A stretch of 64,000 bases of DNA from Oikopleura dioica. Its lineage: Eukaryota; Animalia; Chordata. The first letter of the stretch is position 1. Each line of letters opens with the position of its first letter. This document shows, in pieces, positions 1-21,390 of this stretch. The notes below the pieces were generated by a model, which saw only the letters and a list, made by a program, of their open reading frames with translations, did not search any database and was not told where the DNA came from. The stretch is taken from assembly GCA_907165135.1 (NCBI GenBank), contig OU015566.1:4464001-4528000 (forward strand), read 5' to 3'. The position numbers and the translations under genes are program-made.

Positions 1-3000
1 TCCACGGTGCTCGCGCGCGACATGAGCCATGAACTGGTCGTGCTGGCGATTGAGGCGGCCCTAGAAACGATAGATTTAGGTAGAATAAGTTGAGAGTGTT
101 TAAAACGAAATTCAGAGTCCCGAGGCTGATTCGAGCTTCACCGAAGGCGGACGCAACGGTAGAAACTCAAGCCACGAAGCCGCAGACAACGCTGTTCTAC
201 TAAATTGGATAAACTCACCACTCCGACGTGCGACAAGATCCGCGGAGCACTTCCGGTAGGGGCACCATGCGTACTGCGCAGCCGGTAGTTGGTCTCCTCC
301 ATGACCCATGAGCCAAGATAAAGCTCACCCAATCCTGGAAGCATCACGGGAATACGGCCTGAAAAGAGAGTTTAAGGAACAAGTAAATAATGTAGTAATA
401 AAACTTACAAGGGGGAGTGTACGGGTTTCGGCGGCCGGGATTTCGTACGCGCATCTCTAGGGCGTTGGGCGTGACGTTGAGTCCAACGTTCCACTCGTCG
501 TCGACACGTTCTTGGCGGTCACGCTCGTAATCGCGCAAAACGCGGAAGTCGACCTGTAAGGAAATTTAGTTCTAGTTCGCTTTATTTTAAATTCTTTCAA
601 TTTAGCTTTTGAAATTCGAATGAATCCTAGACTAATCTACCTTACTTACGTAAAACTGTTGAATCGACTGGAGCCCAGTCGTGAAGAGCGAGAGGGGAGG
701 GCATTTCAGGAGAAGATACTTCACCTGAAGTGCGTTGAAAAACGCAAATTCCAAAGGATTGCCCATCATCATCTTGTAGCGCGAAGTGGCTAGGCTGAGC
801 GCACGGGAAACCAAAGTCGCGAAGGCCAATTCACCAACGTTGTCTTTGGGCCGGAAGAAAACTAAAATTCAAATTTAGTATGAGAAAGTCACCGGAGAAA
901 ACGCCAGCCCGCGACAACGATTTAGAAGTGGACATGATGGTGTGGTCCACGTTGGAAAGCGAAGAAAGTTTCTGGACTATGCTCGAGATCGCCGGCGAGT
1001 TCGACCTGATCAGGGCTGCCAAAGTGGAAAACTTGAAGAGCCCGATTTTCAAGAAGCCAGCCACGTTCCCGTTAGAAGGCTTTTCTGACTCGGCTGAGAT
1101 GTTGTTTTTGAGCTAGCAGAATTCTACTGGCCCAAGCTCGAAAACGTGGATACCGGCGGATACGTCCGAACCCAAGAAGATCTAACGGTGTGCCAAGAAA
1201 TCTGCTCGCTCACGGGGCCGCTAATGAACATTAAAACGCCGGGCGAATTTCCGATCGCTTCGATCAGCCCCGAACTCTGTGGGTCCGAATCGAAACGCCC
1301 GAGCCTGACGACATTAAACGACTGGCAAAATGGATCAGCAGCATCTGGGATCAGATCGAAAAGGCCGAAAGACGAGAGCTAGCTGCTTTGGTTCGCCTCA
1401 AAGAAAGCGGCGAAGCAGGTAAAACTTATTAAATTAAAAGCCGATTGATGATTTAATTTTCGGTTATTCTTTTCTCGTGATTAAAAAAGAAATTATAGCT
1501 TTAAATCAATTAAAGTAGACAGAATAACTTACGTCCAAGATCGCGACGCCGCCGATTTGGCTCGGGATGGCCTGGATATTCCGGACTATCTTCGAATTCG
1601 CCCTCAAGTCCGACGGAACGCACCAGCTTCCACAACAGGAATCGAGTTCGCTTGGAACGGCGATTCACGCCATCTGGGGAACCAGTAGCTACGGCGGGAC
1701 CGTCGACCATGTTTTCTCCAGTGCCGTCAATCGATCGCTGATGCTAGAAATATAAAATTAAATTTGGAACCGTTTATTTGGATTTAAGCTCAAATTGTGC
1801 CCGAAATTGTTTTTCTTTCTGATTTCTATTAATGAACAATTTTGCGTTTTAAAAGCCAAACTAACCTGGAACCATTTATAAGAAATGATCACGGCGAGCA
1901 GGAACGGATCGGAGACAAAGTGACAGTCCAGAAAGCCGTACTCGTCGTGAAGGTCGCCGACGCACTGATGACCTGGGACGTTGTCAAGCCACTCAACAAT
2001 TCTGGCGAGCGGGACCCTGTGGGCGAACAAGATCTTGACGAACTGGGTGACGACCCCAGCATGGCGAGAGTTGGCCACATAGTACTCTTCGTCAGGATGA
2101 TCTCCTTCGTCGTCTGGGAAGCGGCGGAAACCCCGGATTTGCCCTTCAAGATCGTTCCAAAGAGCAGCCAACGAGTAGTCGGTATCGTAAAGCGGATACT
2201 CACACTCGAGTCGACCTTCGTGATCGTTGCGCCAGCCGAATTCGCGCGGACCATCGATTCCACCGTGATGGGTCTGAAATATTTAAGACAGGTAAAACCA
2301 AACCAAAAGAATAAAAACTTACCGAATAGTAGTAGCGAATCCAAAAGGAGCCGTCCCAGTTGGGCGTAAAGGCATCGTAGCCAATTTCGTCGTTGCGGAC
2401 AACCTTGGACTTAACTAGCAACTCGCGGTCGAGGAGGGTGTTCTCCAAAGTCGCTTCCAAGTTGCCGAACTTGTCGTAACTGGCGTTGTACTCAAGACAG
2501 TTGCGCCTAACAAGCTGGGTGATGCGAGGATCTTCTTCGACGTGCGCCAGAGCAGCACGGACGGTAGCTTTCCACTCGTCGAGCTTGAAGTTGGCAGCGT
2601 CGTGGTCCAGGCTAAAAGGATTAATTTAACCGAGAAAGTTTAAATCATTCCGAAATTATTTTACATAAATTTCAAAGTTAAAATGATAGTTCGCAAGCTC
2701 CGAAAATTAACAAAATTAATTAACCTCGATTAAAATTTGGAAAGGTTTAGAAGGGACCAGCTCGTAACGATGGATTCGGATGACGAATTTCTTAACAACG
2801 ACTCGAACCAGGAGACTAATAACAATCCTGATCAGAACATGGTTGGAGCTGTGGCTCCAAGCATCCCGAACCCATCGAACCAAGTGCCCCCTGTGATGCA
2901 AGCCGTAATCAACGGCGTGTCTATGCTCGGACAAGCCCAAAATGTTAACCCTTTCACGGCTCAATTCCAGCAAGGACCTTCAAACCGCCAAGAAAACCAC

Positions 3001-3460
3001 GGGAATGGACCCCGAAAGGTTCAACTCGTTTCGTCAGACGACGAAGATGAAGGCCCCGAACCTGAGAACTCGGAAACGATCGACGCAGCAGAAGTTGCGA
3101 ACTCGAACTATCGAGCCGCAGTTAGCGCAGTCCGGGAAAGGGAAGAACAAGCTGAATTTCAGTCCGAACTGAGCAACGGTTGCAATCCGACTCGTTTTTG
3201 GCTATCTTTTCGCAGCTCGACACGATTAGAACTCAAATGCGACGTGACGTTGCTGCTGCCAAATTCGTCCGATCAGTCCAGAGTGTCGCGAAATCTTTGG
3301 AGCTAATCTCAAATTCGATTGCAAGCGAACAAGACCCGGTAAGAGATTTAAATTACCTGTCGACCAAGCGCTGGTAATAGTCGAGTTGTTGCCGGATTTT
3401 GTAGTTGGCTGGGAAGGGCGGACCATCATCCTCGGGAAGCTCGTGAGCAGCCAAATTCAT
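1..3460 (-). CDS. Orphan multi-exon protein (gene M, >500 aa, runs off the left edge); interleaved with plus-strand exons
   Basis: Coding exons 3460-3357, 2611-2323, 2273-1866, 1743-1533, 861-650, 553-409, 358-219, 60-<1 are joined by GT-AG introns whose phases (2,0,0,1,0,1,0) all preserve one frame: MNLAAHELPEDDGPPFPANYKIRQQLDYYQRLVDSLDHD...FWIRYYYSTHHGG...KWFQHQRSIDG...RDLGLFFRPKDN...QQFYVDFRVLRD...TPPCRIPVMLPG...SHVGVGRLNRQHDQF. No family recognised. Confidence 0.8.
116..203 (+). CDS. Probable terminal exon of a plus-strand gene starting outside the window, nested in intron 61-218 of gene M
   Basis: Acceptor gaaattcAG at 114-115, open frame VPRLIRASPKADATVETQATKPQTTLFY*, stop at 201-203. 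Confidence 0.4.
880..1432 (+). CDS. Orphan coding exon/gene P1 nested in intron 862-1532 of gene M (two apparent 1-nt deletions)
   Basis: Acceptor aaatttAG 877-878 then ATG 880. Three successive open frames join by -1 shifts near 1105-1109 (T5) and 1233-1250 into MRKSPEKTP...EMLF/ELAEFYWPKLEN...TPGEF/SDRFDQPRTLWVRIETPEPDDIKRLAKWISSIWDQIEKAERRELAALVRLKESGEAGKTY*. A donor GT at 1419 is an alternative end. Confidence 0.55.
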
Positions 3461-4764
3461 TTCTAGAACATTTTTGTTTAGTATCGACCTGGAAGCCTCT
3501 GCTTTATCCGGGAATTGGCTCTGGCAATGGCTAGCAACGAGCTAATTAGCATTATGCTGGAAGTCCCGCAAGGCGCTTGCTGCGAACGATGGCGAGTCGA
3601 AGTCAGCTGGACCAGAAACTGCGTAGTACAGTCAGCTAGTCCCATCCGCATGTCCCTGACTTTCACTCACCGCGCCTTCCGAGACTGTAGCGAATTCATG
3701 GAAAAGCGCTACAAGAATTACTCTATCGAGGACATGGTCGAACATTTCAAAGGCGAAATCGAGACCGTTTTCAAAGAATTGGGTGGACGAGGCTTCAAAG
3801 TTCCCCAAATTGACGAAGACTTACTGCTTGATGCTCGAGTTGGCCCGCTTTTGCGAGAACTCGTGGCTCCGATAAGGTCAATCCGACAGCTAGTAAGTAA
3901 AACAAGGAGCTGTTAATCCGTCTAGATTAGTAAATTCTATAAGATGCCCGTTAAAGCCAACTTAATTCCCTAATCGAGTCCCATCAAAAATTCAAAATTA
4001 ATTAAATTTACCTGTGTTCGCCAGTCGTTGAAACAGAACTGACGTTTATTCGAAAACAAGGACGAAAACAGGTGACGTTCTAGAAATTCAGGAATTTAAT
4101 TTTCTCTTTTGCTTCTCTAGTCGAAAAATAAAATTTTGCACGAAGAGAGAAAGGAAATAGCGCTATTATAGATCGAGAGAAAGCTAGGATTTCGAGACAA
4201 GAAGCGCGTAATTAGAGCGCGGCCAATCACAGAGAGCCAATCAACGAGCGCATTTTGAGTCATCAACAAAGCCATCAGAATTTATTTAAACAAGAAAAAG
4301 AGATAAAAATAAAAGAAACTGTGAAACAAATTACGAAAGAAATGTAAGAAAGAACCATCTATGAAGTTAATTTAGACGCAAACTAAAATTTAAAACGACA
4401 AATTAAACTATAGCGAATTCTCAAAAATCTTAATTCCCGATTTTAGATCAAGGAGCAGAAGTCGAAGCTTGACAGGCTCAAGACTAAGTCTTTGGATGAT
4501 TTGGTGAAAATGGTCGAAGCTGACTGCCTAGCGGGCCGCTTGAAGAGTTTGCTCGGCTTGCCAGAGGTCCGAAACTCACACGTGGTCGTCGTATCTCCAA
4601 CAAACAGGCTAGTGGTTTACGACTTGTCCGAATCGCCAGCGAAAGAACTCCCGAAGCTACCAGCTTGGGCGCAAGGAACTATGGTAACCAACCATAAGAA
4701 GTTCTTCAACAATAAACGCAAGAACGGCCAAGCAAGTGGCAGCTACAAGAAGTTTAAAAAATAG
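2770..4764 (+). CDS. Orphan three-exon gene P2 interleaved with gene M
   Basis: Exons 2751-3338, 3482-3892 and 4447-4764, phase-0 GT-AG introns 3339-3481 and 3893-4446; junctions EQDP/YRPG and IRQL/IKEQK are in frame. N/Q/P-rich acidic N-terminus. One -1 frame change between about 3156 and 3200. Confidence 0.7.
4012..4081 (-). other. Probable non-coding 5' exon of gene M inside intron 2 of P2
   Basis: Minus-strand donor cag/GTAAATT at 4011 and acceptor ttctAG near 4082; the next acceptor (3463-3464) lies 2 nt before the gene M ATG. Confidence 0.5.
4200..4255. promoter_or_regulatory. Candidate promoter with two CCAAT boxes
   Basis: ggCCAATcac at 4223 and gCCAATcaa at 4237 among GCGC motifs, just upstream of the gene M leader exon. 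Confidence 0.4.
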
Positions 4765-5282
4765 AAGGTATGAAAGATTTTGGGAAATTAATACAATGGA
4801 ATCAGCTTAAAATTGTCAAGCCAATTAAGCAACTTAGTAAAGCTAAAGAGGGGGGACGAGATTCCATCCTGGTAAAAGGAAGACTTGTCTTCCATGATTC
4901 CATTAGTCAACACGGTCGCGAGCGACCGGGCGGTAGGGCCGCAGGGCCAGCGCAAGGCTGACACCTAGACGCGAAAACATCCCGCGCTGCGTTTCGACAA
5001 GTTCAGTCGTCGAAATCGGACAACGCGGTAAGTCACTTCTCGAGAGATTACGAGAGAACGTGAGTTTAGAAGTTAGGACCCGGGCCCACGTACATTTAGA
5101 ACGTTACGTGCGAAACGCAACGTTAGAACTAACATTTAGAATTTAGATTTCCGCCCGACTCGACTTGCAGCAGAAGACAACAACGAAGAGAATTCCACTG
5201 TTCATTCTGCCCCGAGAATATAAATAAACCTAACTTAAATCGAATTAGTCCCACGTTTCTTGATATAAATTGACTTATAATA

Positions 5283-5733: not shown

Positions 5734-7784
5734 ATGAAACTTGGGAGTACATTTTTCGCTTTTCAATCTTTTTCGAGCGCTGACCCACTTGGTGCTAGAG
5801 GCGGAATATCTTGCCATGATTTGAGCGAGTATGAAGGAGACCCGTTCATGGTCAATTATTGCAAGGAGATTTTGGCGGAAGCGCATTGCTCGTTTAAATC
5901 CTCGGAATGCCCAGTTGACGATTGCCTCTTTGGGCACAAAAGGGACTCCACTGGCTGCGTCATCGACTCATGCATTTGCGACACGGAGCCGCAAGGAAAG
6001 GTGCATTTTGGAGACATCATGGTCGACGGCTTCGTGCAAAACATGATGACACCGCCTGATGACACTCCTCGTGATCCAAATGTCATGAGAGCCGCGGACA
6101 TATCCGTTCCGAGATGGACCGATTATCGGGAAGGTGGGTTTGTGTACATCCCGTACAGAATTTCCAGGCTCAATCCCTTGGGGCAAAGAGCGGCTCTTGC
6201 AGGAATGAAAATACTCGAAGACGGGAGCTGCCTCCGTTTCAGAGAACGAAGCGATGAGAGGGACTTTATGGACTTTTTTATCGGCGACGGATGCTATTCT
6301 TGGATCGGAAAACTCGGTAAAATCTTCATTAAATCCAATTATTGATGAGTTAAGGTGGTGCGCAGGAGATCTCGCTTGGTGTAGGCTGCCATTATGCTTC
6401 CACAGCTGCTCATGAGATCATGCATGCCTTGGGCTTTCATCACGAGCAAATGCGCCCCGACCGCGACTCATATGTCCAGTACATAGAAGATAACGTCGAA
6501 CCAGAAATGCGCCACAACTTCAAAACAATCCACCCTTCGAAGTGGAATTCATATGGGCAGCCCTATGATGTCAACTCAGTAATGCAATACAGTGGCTACT
6601 CCTTCACTCGAAACTGGAAGCCAACTCTTCTCGACAGGAGTACTGGAAAGCCGACAAAACGGAATACGAAATTGACCGAGTCGGATTTTTTCCAGATAAA
6701 CGCGCTTTACGGCTGCGAGGAAACCTCAACTCCGACTCCAACGACGAAATCAACAACGACGACGGCGACAACGGCGACGAAAGAATGTCGTGACTTCGAT
6801 ATTGCTGAGAACATCGAGCACAGGGGTATCTTCAACCTTATTGAAAAACTTTCTCACGAATGATATTTTTAAAGGGAATGACATCACTTCCTTCCAAGTT
6901 TCGCCTGGCGAAGCAGGTCAAAGGGAATGTGAGCAAAGTTGTCGCTCAAACCCCGACTGCGGTGGTTTCACTCTTTACGGTGAAAACAGAAATCCATCCG
7001 ATTCGTATCGCTGTTTTTTGAAATCCTCTATGAGCTACAGTATGTTACTCACCTCTGGACGCATTTCCGGGTATAGAAATAAGAACTGCCCGTCTTCAAC
7101 CACTACTCCAACAACGAAATCAACGACGAGGCCGACAACGACCACAAAAGAATGCCGTGACTTTGAGATCGAGGAAAATGTCGAGTACTTAGGTGTCTAC
7201 AAAATATATCGAAAGAAAGTTTCAATATTTTCTGAAAACTTTGAATTAAATAAAATTAAGGGAATGACGTCGCTTCCTTCCAAGTTTCGCCCGGTGAAAC
7301 TGGCCAAAGAGAATGCGAGGAAAGCTGTCGCTCCTCACCTGGCTGCGCTGGTTATACCTTTTACGAATGGCATGTGTTTCAACCCAACCACTGCTTCTTG
7401 AAAACCAACACGAATGTGAAAAGAACAAATATCGCTGATCGCATTTCCGGAAGAAAAACTGGAGACTGCGGAGCGTCAACGAGCACTCCAACCATCTGTG
7501 CCGACCTGAGCGGCTACGAAAGCCAGTGCGCAAGTTGGAAATCGTATGGATTCTGTACCTCCTACAGTCGAACTTCCATGGAGCATTATTGCGCCAAGAC
7601 TTGTGGCTTTTGCGCATCTAACGGCGAATCGGTAAGAACCTACAGTGCGAAATATGTTCTGTAATCGTTTGTTCAGTGCACCGATGAGTACACATACTGC
7701 GCATCATTGGCGGCTGATGGCGAGTGCTCTAGAAACTCTGCTTTCATGCTTAAGTCATGCAAAAAATCCTGTGGCAAATGCTAG
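5734..7784 (+). CDS. Secreted astacin-family zinc metalloprotease with 2 PAN/apple-like and 2 ShKT domains
   Basis: Signal-like N-terminus MKLGSTFFAF; HEIMHALGFHHEQMRPDRD zinc motif; SVMQY Met-turn; Thr-rich linkers; two C-x3-C...C...C PAN-like repeats; two C-terminal ShK modules. Introns 6317-6354, 6826-6874, 7193-7260 and 7632-7676 keep frame. Confidence 0.95.
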
Positions 7785-7935
7785 ACGAGCTTTTTCCTGA
7801 ATCCTGATTAGTCGAAATTATTTTTCCCCGCTGCTAAAAATTTTTTCCTCCTTTTTTCAGGTGGGCGTCTTTAGCTCAATAAAATGATTTGATTGTTTCT
7901 TTTTATTTATTAATTATATTTATTACTATTCATTT

Positions 7936-10900
7936 TTATGAATTTCTGAACATTCTTTTCGCGATTTTCTGCTCTCCTCGGTAGATGATCGCTTCTTCGG
8001 TCCTCCAGTTTTTGAACGAGAATTTTCCATCTTTGAACAATGCCTGAAATCGTTGCTTGAATCTTCTAGAGCTCTGTTTTCTTACCTTGATTAGCATGAC
8101 AGGAATCCAAATCAAGCAAAGAATATGAAGAATGGCGATAACTGCTGATCCGGCAGCGCTGTACTCTTGCTTCAAATAATCACTGTCTGGGTTCGTTGCA
8201 TTTTCGAGCTTCCAGTCCCCTGAAAACATAGATGACTCATCAAGATTTTCGATTTCTCAAACCTGTTGTCTTGTCCCAAACTTTGTAGGCCGGCGGGTTT
8301 TGGAAAATATCAACCATGAAGAAGATCAAAACGAAAAGAATCAATCCAGGAGAGAGGACAGTCCAGCATGTTTTCAAAAAGAGTCTGCAAATTCTGACAA
8401 CAAGTCCAGGTTGTTCTCCATCTTCTCCGTAAATCATCCAGTCAATTTCAGAGAGCCATTTCTCAGCGCCATAAATCTTAATTATTTTGTGAGAAAATTT
8501 CACAAAAAATAAGGGTAAAATTCGCGTGGGCGGCTTTTTTGCCTTCTGATTGGCTCAAAATATGGGGACATATTTTCTGGCTCAAAATGTTGGGACATAT
8601 TTTGAGCCAATCAGAAGCCGAAAAGATCGCCTACGCGAATCTCACCCAAATTTTTTCACGAAAAATCATCTAAAATCTGTGATTTCTTACCCATGCAACG
8701 ACTACAAATTGCAAAACGCCAATAATCAGCAAATTGATCGAAGCCGAATAATCATTGAAAATATCCAACCAGTAGTTACCAGCATTCGTCGCGAAAATCA
8801 ACCCAATGGCAAATGCAAAACATGACATTACCAGCACCAGCGCTAGAATTTCCCTGACGTTTGATTTTTTTCAAATGCTACTGACCTTGTTTCGGAATTT
8901 TTCGCCATTTACTACTGGCTTGAAGACCGTCGTAAACTGGAGTTATGACGCCCTCAAATGTTCCGACCATGGATCCGAGGCCGAGTAAAATAACCATAAA
9001 GAAGAAAATCATCGAAAGAATGAACGAGCCGGGAAGGTCAACGACAGCTTCAGCGACGGCGATGAAGATGAGACCGGTTCCAGAAGGAGTATCTTCTTGA
9101 AGAATCTAGAAAAAATCGTCGACAAAGAAAAAAGCAGTCGAAAAACCTTTGAAAAATCGCATTTTGATTGCCGCTGGAAAACATCAACAGGATCGCAGTT
9201 TTCGCTCTCACACTTGTTAAGGACAAAGTCATAGATTTCATCATAAGTTTTATCGCCGTAAAAGTCCTCGGCTTCGTCGAAGAAATTGAGAGAGTTGTCG
9301 ATCGTTGTACTCTTTTTCATCATTTTTAAATTCGATCGAAATTTGGCTTATTCTTACCTTGCAGTTTTCAAATGCTGTCCAAGCTCGATTTCCAAGAAGC
9401 GAGAAAATGACACAACTTGCAAACAACGAAGTTCCACTGAAAGAAAAGATTCACCCTATTTTTCTTCTTCGAGATCACCTGTTGACAGAAGCGACGATCG
9501 TAGCATCACGAAGGAGATTCTGTTTGATTGGGTTGTAGCTTGAAAACGCGACGATTCCACCAAAACAGACGGACAAGGAGAAAAAGATTTGACTCGATGC
9601 ATCGATCCACACTCTCGCATCCTAAAATTGGTCAGAAATGAAAATTTCACGAATGTCACGATTTGCTGGAAATGTCACGAAAAAGATACATGTTCTCGTG
9701 ACGTTCGTGACATTCGTGACATTCGTGACATTCGTTGGTCAGTACTGAAAATTTCACGAATGTCACGAATGTCACGATTTACTGGAAATGTCACGAAAAG
9801 TGAACATGTTTTCGTGACATTCGTCAGATTAGTGCCATTCGTGACATTTTCAGCACCGTCGCTTAAATTCTTCAAGTAAATTATGAGTCGAAAGTGTACC
9901 TTGAGCGCTTCCCAGTCGGCTTGAAACAACTCCGCGATTCCTTCTGGTCCGCCAGCAGTGCTTAACCCGATCCCCAAAAAGATCAACAAAACCACATAAG
10001 GCGTGATCGCGATGAAATACAAAAACGCTCCTCCCGCTTCAGCTCCATTCATGGAAATCATAAAAACAATGACCCAGCCGAGCAAGAGCACCAAAACCAT
10101 ATCGCTATTCAACCCTCCATCGGGACGTAATCAGCCGTGACGTTGAGCGTGTCTCTGTACCAGTAGTAAACTTGTGTTCCAGCAAGAGTGCATTCTTCAA
10201 CGGGCCAGGGAATATTCGACCAGGTCTGATCCCAGGGCGCGCGGGGGACAGCATCGGCGATGGCAGAGGCGGCAGCGGTGACGCAGACTCCGAGGCCGCT
10301 GTCTTTTCCGCCGTCGCAGGAAACAGTGGTGTTGACGACGGGGCATGCTTTCCAGGGCAGCGGGTTCTATTTTTTTTATTAGACAAATTTTTCTGGAACC
10401 GACAAAAATTTCGACTAATTTTCCGTGGAAATTTCCAACCAATCAGAAGCCTGGCTTTGGCGAACCGGCCAATCAGCGGCCAAGTACCCGCCCACGCAAA
10501 ATTTGTCGATTTTTTGTCGGTTCCTGACGCCTCCACATTTTTCTTTCCAAAAAGATCGCTCATCGGATTTACCTGAAACGAACTCAAGAAGTAATAAAAC
10601 GCCCAAGCCACGATGACATTATAATACAGCGCCACGAATGCCGAAACCGCCACCATAGCCAGTCCAACTCCGAGAAATCCCGGATGAAATTTCGTGTACG
10701 CCCCACTAGCTCCACATCGCAATCGCTGACCAAGCGACAGTTCCAGCACCAAAATCGGGAAGCCGATGATAAAGAGCGAGATAAAGTAGGGAATGAGAAA
10801 AGTCCCCCGCCATTCGTTTGCGCCAAATACGGAAATCGCCAAATGTTGCCAAGTCCAACGGCAAAGGCGATATTTGCGCACATGAACTGGAACTGATTCG

Positions 10901-10942
10901 GCCATTCCTTACGGCCGCCTTTGACGTTTGTCACGTCATTTA
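7936..10942 (-). CDS. SLC6 sodium:neurotransmitter/amino-acid symporter (SLC6A15-20-like); start codon unresolved
   Basis: Motifs [86 protein letters not shown]. Two frameshifts in homopolymers (10804-10808, 10122-10124). Confidence 0.93.
8520..8670. mobile_element. MITE family B (ccaatcag) variant in SLC6 intron
   Basis: ctgattggctcaaaa / ttttgagccaatcagaagcc inverted core, similar to 10388-10535. Confidence 0.5.
9640..9860. repeat. Palindromic short-unit (gtcacgaa/ttcgtgac) element in SLC6 intron
   Basis: Runs of tgtcacgaa and ttcgtgaca 9-mers in alternating orientation. Confidence 0.7.
10388..10535. mobile_element. MITE family B in SLC6 intron
   Basis: TIR tctggaaccgacaaaaatttcgac ... 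gtcgattttttgtcggttcc; two internal ccaatcag motifs. Confidence 0.75.
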
Positions 10943-20154: not shown

Positions 20155-21390
20155 GCCCCCCCCTCTTGAATTCAGTTAAGTAAGGCGCAAAAACGACCCG
20201 ACGGGGAGGCAAGCCCCTTCTCTTTAATTAAGTCAGGTAAGGGGCAAAGCCGACCCGAAGGGCAGGAAAGCCCCGTCTCCTGAATTCAGTCAGGTAAGGA
20301 GCCGAGCCAACCCGAAGGGGAGGCTAGCCTCGTCTCTTGAATTCAGTTAGGTAGGGGGCCAAGCCGACCCGAAGGGGAGGCTAGCCTCGTTTCTTGAATT
20401 CAGTCATGAAAGGGGCCAAGCCGACCAGGAGGGGAGCCCAGTCCCGTTTCTTGGATTCAGTTAGGTACAGGGCCAAGCCGACTCGAAGGGGAAGCGAGCT
20501 CAGTTTCTTGAATTCAGTTAGGTAAGGGGCAAAGCCGACCCGGAGGGGAGGCCAGTCCCGTTTCTTGGATTCAGTTAGGTACGGGGCCAAGCCGACTCGA
20601 AGGGGAAGCGAGCTCAGTTTCTTGAATTCAGTTAGGTAAGGGGCAAAGCCGACCCGGAGGGGAGGCCAGTCCCGTTTCTTGGATTCAGTTAGGTACGGGG
20701 CCAAGCCGACTCGAAGGGGAGGCGAGCCGCATTTCTTAGATTCAGTTAGGTAAGAGGACAAGCCGACCGGAAGGGGAGGCCAGCCTTGTCTCTTAAATTC
20801 AGTCATGAAAGAGGCCAAGCCGACCCGGAGCGAAGGCAAGTCCCGTTCCTTGGATTCAGTTAGGTACGGGGCCAAGCCGACTCGAAGGGGAGGCGAACCC
20901 CGTTTCTTGGATTCAGTTAGGTACGGGGCCAAGCCGACCCGAAAGGGAGGCGAGCTTCATTTCTTGAATTCAGTCATGTAAGGACCAAAGCCGACCCGGA
21001 GGGGAGACAAGCCCCGTTTCTTGGATTCAGTTAGGTACGGGTCGGCTTGGTCCCTTACCTGACTGAATTTAAGAGACGGGGCTGGCCTCCCCTTCGAGTC
21101 GGCTTGCCGCTTACCTGACTGAATACAAGAGACGGGGCTGGCCTCCCCTTCGGGTCGGCTTTGCCCTTTACCTGACCGAATTCAAGAGACGAGGCTGGCC
21201 TCCCCTTTGAGTCGGCTAGGTCCCTTACCTGACTGAATTCAAGAGATGAGGCTTTCCTCCCCTTTGAGTCGCCTTGGTCCCTTACCTGACTGAATTTAAG
21301 AGACGGGGCTGGCCTCCCCTTCGAGTCGGCTTCGCCGCTTACCTGACTGAATACAAGAGACGGGGCTGGCGTCCCCTTCGGGTCGCCTTA
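20155..21390. repeat. About 60-bp minisatellite with an orientation switch at about 21040
   Basis: Unit like gaattcagttaggtacggggccaagccgacccgaaggggaggcgagccccgtttctt; about 15 forward then about 6 inverted units. Confidence 0.95.

Follow-up and report, generated by a model that had tools for sequence, protein, structure and literature searches.

We examined the left end of a 64,000-nucleotide (nt) stretch of the genome of the larvacean Oikopleura dioica (GCA_907165135.1, contig OU015566.1, positions 4,464,001 to 4,528,000 of the forward strand; hereafter the window), where two spliced genes on opposite strands each carry exons within the introns of the other, a layout that is the same in two metagenome contigs, L004 and L005. 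The minus-strand gene, which we call M, consists of eight coding exons joined by seven GT..AG introns, and its coding sequence of 523 codons contains no stop and is still open at the left window edge; the chance that a frame would be kept at all seven junctions is about (1/3)^7, or 5e-4. In order of transcription, exon 1 lies at 3357-3462 (ATG at 3460) and is spliced in frame, followed by exon 2 at 2323-2611, exon 3, a conserved helical core, at 1866-2273, exon 4 at 1533-1743, exon 5 at 650-861, exon 6 at 409-553, exon 7 at 219-358, and exon 8, which is cut at the window edge and is probably the last, at 1-60. A candidate leader exon (donor at 4011) and promoter at 4012-4240 would lie upstream on the same strand, with a TATA-like sequence at ~4165-4170 and two CCAAT boxes at ~4223-4240. 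The exons of M have a GC content of 50-67%, and its four short introns (49, 122, 96, and 50 nt) are empty, with a GC content of 26-28%. The long introns reach 45-46% GC because plus-strand exons sit in them, and the span 1-4764 is an alternation of GC-rich and AT-rich blocks.

On the plus strand, we distinguish P1 and P2. Exon 1 of P2 (2751-3338, ATG at 2770) lies within the M intron 2612-3356, exon 2 (3482-3892) between the M promoter and M exon 1, and exon 3 (4447-4764) encodes a Lys/Arg-rich tail and the stop. The two P2 introns are GT..AG introns of phase 0, of which the first (3339-3481) holds M exon 1 and the second (3893-4446) holds the candidate M leader and promoter. P1 occupies 879-1418, within the M intron 862-1532, between an acceptor at 878 and a donor at 1419. 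Both sites are conserved, the donor in position and phase in L004, and the exon most likely ends there, not at the stop at 1432. Were donor 1419 joined to acceptor 2750, P1 would terminate three bases ahead of the start codon of P2, and the plus strand would then form one unit with a large intron holding M exons 2-4. A further GC-rich insert in the last M intron (P0, 116-203, acceptor at 115) is a candidate plus-strand exon only; it has a good acceptor and no good donor, and the matching L004 intron, which is also GC-rich (0.44), gave no protein match. The coding sequences of M and P never overlap, together they make up 74% of 1-4764, and four gaps between opposite-strand exons measure only 15-21 nt.

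Much of this arrangement had been described in a sequence-only reading of the same DNA, and our analysis bears out its claims that M is in frame over eight coding exons, that the four short M introns are empty, and that the two strands share no coding sequence and leave little DNA to spare. Its claim that each of four long M introns contains a plus-strand coding exon stands for 3482-3892, whereas 879-1432 and 2751-3338 are broken in frame and 116-203 is unsupported as coding. Likewise, the claim that the P2 introns hold parts of M is correct for M exon 1 in intron 1, while the leader and promoter in intron 2 remain candidates: a CCAAT box is also present in P2 intron 2 of L005, but the leader donor has no clear counterpart there.

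Searches and fold predictions were run exon by exon, and exons were joined only in local scripts for the frame check. The M exon 3 query found three distant proteins (P0001-P0003) at 33-38% identity, with both flanking introns conserved, and from the clusters of these proteins we reached longer metagenome contigs. The same query returned no annotated Oikopleura protein, and exact look-ups of ten window open reading frames (ORFs) gave no match. The contigs likely come from larvaceans, since their intron sizes and splice signals resemble those of the window. At 30-50% amino-acid identity, L004 and L005 keep the opposite-strand layout of M and P with the order unchanged. Exon-by-exon tblastn placed M exons 3, 4, 5, and 7 of L004 on one strand and the three pieces of P1 (see below) with P2 exons 1 and 2 on the other, and in L005, which represents a more distant lineage, P2 exons 1-3 are interwoven with M exons 1-3. 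The interleaving described from the window is thus found with the same order and strands in L004, and as a partial weave in L005.

The individual exons agree with this. The YY.R(L/I) motif and phase-2 donor of M exon 1 are kept in L004 (474-639) and L005 (1737-1799), in both cases within P2 intron 1, and M exon 2 matches L002, L005, and L006 weakly while sharing the position of its downstream donor. M exon 4 is 45-48% identical to L003 and L004 with phase 1 kept, M exon 5 is 38% identical to L004 (E 3e-12) and 212 nt long in both, and M exon 7 is 42% identical to L004 over 24 amino acids with phase 0 kept. For M exon 6, the protein search gave no significant match; the exon is in frame, and its phase and size are as in the L004 exon. 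The L004 counterpart of M exon 8 is an exon of 162 nt that holds the stop about 50 codons in. All six comparable M intron phases are identical in L004 (2, 0, 1, 0, 1, 0). On the plus strand, the phase-0 donor of P2 exon 1 is kept, L004 P2 intron 1 is likewise of phase 0, with M exon 1 inside it, and the P2 intron phases match those of the window; P2 exon 2 is 50% identical to L004 (E 2e-36) and 32% to L005, and P2 exon 3 is 44% identical to L005.

The sequence-only reading had held that a lack of codon-level conservation in homologues would speak against either strand being coding; we found such conservation on both. Near-identical L005-family copies differ at 12 synonymous and 2 replacement codons in P2 exon 3 (p 3e-5) and at 19 synonymous and 6 replacement codons in M exon 3 (p 3e-6), both p values being computed against a neutral share of 0.3. 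Taken together, the homology on both strands, the intron phases, and the synonymous excess in the relatives indicate that both strands are under purifying selection, that M and P are real protein genes, and that the woven layout is far older than the window copy. We conclude from these comparisons that M has the structure of a spliced antisense gene and P1 and P2 that of spliced sense genes, and that the alternation of their exons has been kept by distant relatives.

Several differences among the relatives should also be recorded. L005 has an extra 45-nt intron in M exon 3 (3079-3123) and an unrelated M C-terminus (3483-4087). At 1486-1500, L004 lacks the greater part of M exon 2 together with the donor when set against the 99% identical L001 (1-240), and is there either a deletion copy or misassembled. 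Comparison of L005 with L006, L009, and L011 gave patchy differences (100 codons with none, followed by 10-20% of codons differing), which suggests recombination between copies or assembly chimeras. Lastly, L006 2261-2631 (minus strand) contains broken frames without a Pfam match and with a YNL.PR-like stretch, which we take to recall the tail of a Gypsy integrase.

Where exons of the two strands abut, their splice sites share very little DNA. A 17-nt back-to-back double acceptor (862-878) serves M exon 5 and P1, a 19-nt double acceptor (3463-3481) serves M exon 1 and P2 exon 2, and an 18-nt back-to-back double donor (3339-3356) serves P2 exon 1 and M exon 1. A YTAA word is found 13-21 bases upstream of the AG in most introns of the block. 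Since the complement of TTTAG reads CTAAA, a branch-site-like word, the acceptor of each strand at 862-878 provides the branch-site-like word of the other at -17. This region is also the only DNA-level match between the window and L004 (87% over 31 nt).

The frames of P1 and P2 were analysed as they stand, unrepaired. The segment 879-1432 divides into three stretches free of stops, each in a different frame (880-1113, 1098-~1250, and ~1277-1418), which match P1 of L004 at 49, 36, and 38% identity, so that the frame breaks near 1100-1113 and again between about 1245 and 1277; P2 exon 1 has one break near 3195. These are best regarded as lesions or sequence errors and not as recoding signals, because the matching ORFs of L004 and L005 are unbroken at the P2 break, L004 is unbroken at the first P1 break, and the second P1 break corresponds to a 40-nt intron of L004 that is absent from the window. 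We had considered programmed frameshifting or RNA editing, which we rejected given the unbroken relatives at the first P1 break and the P2 break, and small hidden introns, for which no AT-rich stretch with a fitting GT..AG was found. Assemblies of Nanopore reads polished with Illumina reads can keep errors in repeats, and the two breaks that can be placed closely fall in homopolymer runs; the O. dioica assembly of PMC8008620 is of this kind. Whether the window carries a decaying copy or long-read assembly errors is about equally likely either way. P has three breaks and M has none, a difference that is not significant (roughly 0.17, for breaks placed at random over 1939 and 1569 coding bases).

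To the right of the block, a run of 12 purines (4845-4856, plus strand), conserved in L005, is a candidate polypurine tract. It directly precedes a non-coding module of ~400 nt (4857-5262, plus strand; tentative boundaries) that resembles a long terminal repeat (LTR), and is thus placed as the polypurine tract of LTR elements is. The 11-mer at 4851-4861 is identical in L005, and the alignment of the two modules scores 159.5, against 39.7 +/- 7.0 for shuffles. The module carries AATAAA (5223-5228) and an intron-like GT..AG (5028-5146), whose counterpart lies at about 531-640 of L005 (minus strand) with donor and acceptor conserved; if present in a 5′ LTR, donor 5028 could feed the acceptors of P1 and P2. 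After the module come, in L005, the primer-site-like TGGTGAC and a new ORF, as would be expected of an assembly that joins a 3′ LTR to gag, and, in the window, host-like DNA and then an astacin-type protease gene. Six contig records that are 98% identical to L005 (L007, L009, L010, L012, L013, and L015) part from it exactly at the end of the purine run and share one other flank from there on, L007 and L010 being the same contig. In L007 (955-965), L009 (1317-1327), and L015 (755-765), the copy ends after the purine tract, with A/T-rich flank beyond. This copy, which is widely sampled within the L005 family, appears to be a remnant without an LTR that occupies a single host site. The patchy differences between copies are such as a recombining, multicopy family would show.

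The polypurine tract, the LTR-like module with its poly(A) signal, and the junction of primer-site-like sequence and ORF in L005 lead us to think that the block probably belongs to an LTR retroelement; we do not claim membership of Tor or Gypsy. Somewhat less firmly, we favor the reading that it is an accessory-gene cassette in the 3′ part of a Gypsy/Tor-like LTR-type element and that an interlock underlies its layout. The cassette would have pol on one side, beyond the left edge of the window, and the 3′ LTR (about 4857-5262) on the other, the plus strand would be sense, and the element, like LTR elements in general, would be copied from a full-length, unspliced sense RNA. In that genomic RNA the introns of M would be antisense, so that the spliceosome could not remove them and they would survive every round. 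P1 and P2 would be made from spliced subgenomic RNAs, extra genes of LTR elements being expressed from spliced or internally started RNAs (PMC4402516; PMC10309623). If a spliced RNA served as the template, the resulting genome would be missing M exon 1, M exons 2-4, or the M promoter; because each sense intron carries part of M, the weave would lock these introns in place. Pressure on genome length may have packed the exons until opposite-strand splice sites came to share 17-19 nt. The sequence-only reading had presented the block as two woven orphan transcription units. The weave and the orphan proteins stand, but the block is probably not a host gene pair and more probably a cassette from the 3′ part of a mobile element of LTR type, a setting that changes why the weave exists.

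A number of observations weigh against this reading. Neither gag nor pol (protease, reverse transcriptase, RNase H, or integrase) was found in the window or in the contig loci examined, and a second copy of the module was not found in the window, the 5′ side of the element lying beyond. The module does not have TG..CA ends; in both copies it starts with CGAGA and appears to end with TCTTG, although some Gypsy families also lack TG..CA LTR ends. The TGGTGAC of L005 could not be matched to a transfer RNA, none being available for comparison, and the ORF downstream of it has no Pfam or PDB match, its only named Atlas neighbor being the tyrosine-recombinase N-terminal domain Phage_int_SAM_1 (rank 10, score 0.91, 99/256 features; weak). 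In the lineage of L005 and L006, P1 is absent and M has a different C-terminus, and only part of the weave is therefore fixed. Finally, no fold or family backs a function for any of the proteins.

The explanation that comes closest to ours keeps the element and drops the locking: the antisense gene M came first, the sense genes filled its introns as the only free space, and what is conserved reflects the two sets of proteins and not their geometry. We regard this as unlikely, albeit the most serious of the alternatives. One lineage does without P1 and has an extra M intron, and the spacing of most opposite-strand sites varies among the relatives, both of which it would accommodate; it sits less well with M exon 1 being found within P2 intron 1 in 3/3 lineages and with the conservation of a double acceptor at the DNA level. 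A lower probability still attaches to some other mobile element, such as a DIRS/Ngaro tyrosine-recombinase retroelement (with split repeats and no LTRs), a Penelope-like element, or an endogenous DNA virus, in which the weave would reflect packing alone or the same RNA-copy logic. The intron in the terminal module recalls the pseudo-LTRs of Penelope, and the module ends without TG..CA and the weak likeness of the L005 ORF to Phage_int_SAM_1 point the same way. Against this, the module is immediately preceded by the purine tract and immediately followed by TGG, the Rfam scan gave neither a hammerhead nor any other match, no long terminal inverted repeats were found in the DNA examined, and no match was obtained in viral contigs, PHROGs, or BFVD.

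The block might, alternatively, consist of host larvacean orphan genes interleaved by genome compaction, with the right-hand module serving as promoter and spliced leader of a neighboring gene. Introns that are canonical and of host type, a module GT..AG that could be a leader intron, and the lack of pol in the data examined are all compatible with such genes. We nevertheless consider this improbable, given that near-identical copies have flanks that differ from the purine tract on, that an ORF follows the module in L005 and unrelated host DNA follows it in the window, that the P frames are broken in the window copy, and that the M protein was not returned from annotated O. dioica proteomes.

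The orphan status given to the proteins in the sequence-only reading was upheld: exon by exon, M, P1, and P2 gave no Pfam, PHROG, or fold match, and nothing informative came from PDB sequences, Atlas features, viral contigs, bacterial genomes, a first metagenome scan, or BFVD. AlphaFold models were weak (predicted local distance difference test, pLDDT, of 41 for P2 exon 2 and 58 for M exon 3), and fold searches with M exon 3 returned background only (best Z 5.1). The highest 19-residue hydropathy in any exon is 1.46, and with no membrane segment we rejected P1 or P2 as an Env. In P2, an acidic N-terminus is followed by a helical middle and a conserved basic tail (8-9 Lys or Arg in the last 25 residues in both the window and L005), and on account of these features we tentatively entertain, as a doubtful analogy, that it might be a nuclear, Rev/CERV-like RNA-binding regulator by which unspliced genomic RNA is protected or exported. 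For M, our guess would be a soluble regulator or antagonist of host silencing. A slightly better, though still slender, likelihood attaches to the wider scenario of a larvacean family of complex retroelements with a genetic interlock, built from the exon-by-exon alternation of M with the sense genes and from their two-way splice sites, in which only unspliced genomes would give complete progeny and P2 would provide Rev-like export.

Several known systems resemble the block in part. Tor LTR retroelements of O. dioica come from the same host group and have an extra gene between pol and the 3′ LTR, env, which is spliced from the LTR or driven by an internal promoter (PMC4402516). This extra gene is a single sense transmembrane Env, unlike the M, P1, and P2 exons with no membrane segment, and no antisense gene is described for Tor, the word 'antisense' being used for probes only (PMC4402516). 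In the plant elements Retand, Grande, and RIRE2, the stretch from pol to the 3′ LTR includes a conserved antisense coding region that is possibly regulatory; their ORFs are of TRP28 type, and introns are not mentioned (PMC11963269). M, in contrast, has seven introns, is woven with spliced sense genes, and has no Pfam match in the exons scanned, and hence no TRP28 (PF04195). CERV of the Cer1 element of Caenorhabditis elegans (PMC10309623), like retroviral Rev/Rex, is a novel protein made from a spliced LTR-element mRNA that exports intron-containing genomic RNA. The comparison with P2 is one of functional analogy only, the element of the block also facing the export of an intron-containing genomic RNA. 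The antisense gene HBZ of the deltaretrovirus HTLV-1 begins within the 3′ LTR and contains a single intron, whereas M has a candidate internal promoter, eight coding exons, and no overlap with sense coding sequence. The HTLV-1 pX region with HBZ is alike in that spliced sense regulators and an antisense protein gene share a 3′ region (PMC8622228). Nested host genes are common, and nested or overlapping pairs also place the exons of one gene within introns of another on the opposite strand, yet usually one gene is wholly embedded or the ends overlap (PMC2335118); our block differs in its repeated alternation, its 15-21 nt gaps, and its probable location in a mobile element. A literature search of incomplete coverage, and thus no proof of novelty, found no multi-exon antisense gene woven with spliced sense genes in a retroelement. 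Our verdict, from the sequences, is that the architecture is real, conserved, and unusual, and would be a variant of the accessory-gene cassettes of LTR elements.

Retroelements, being copied via RNA, normally shed sense-strand introns, and an element that has kept at least two of them over a long divergence, with an exon or the promoter of an antisense gene in each, would offer a clean test of intron survival through reverse transcription. It would also bear on the rise of complex-retrovirus-style regulation outside vertebrate retroviruses. M, P1, and P2 make three new protein families, and the geometry of splice sites has a minimal natural model in the two-way sites of 17-19 nt. As Oikopleura can be cultured and injected (PMC4402516), expression and localisation can be tested.

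The remainder of the window was considered only in passing. The astacin-type zinc metalloprotease gene (5734-7790, plus strand), which marks the return to host DNA, carries its HEXXH motif at about 6413-6440; its linkers are rich in Thr and its C-terminal modules in Cys. It is followed by an intron-split gene on the minus strand (7936-10905) that resembles a sodium-dependent neurotransmitter (SLC6) transporter. Farther to the right, a 183-codon open frame of ~26-residue repeats (20381-20932, minus strand) is probably a tandem DNA repeat.

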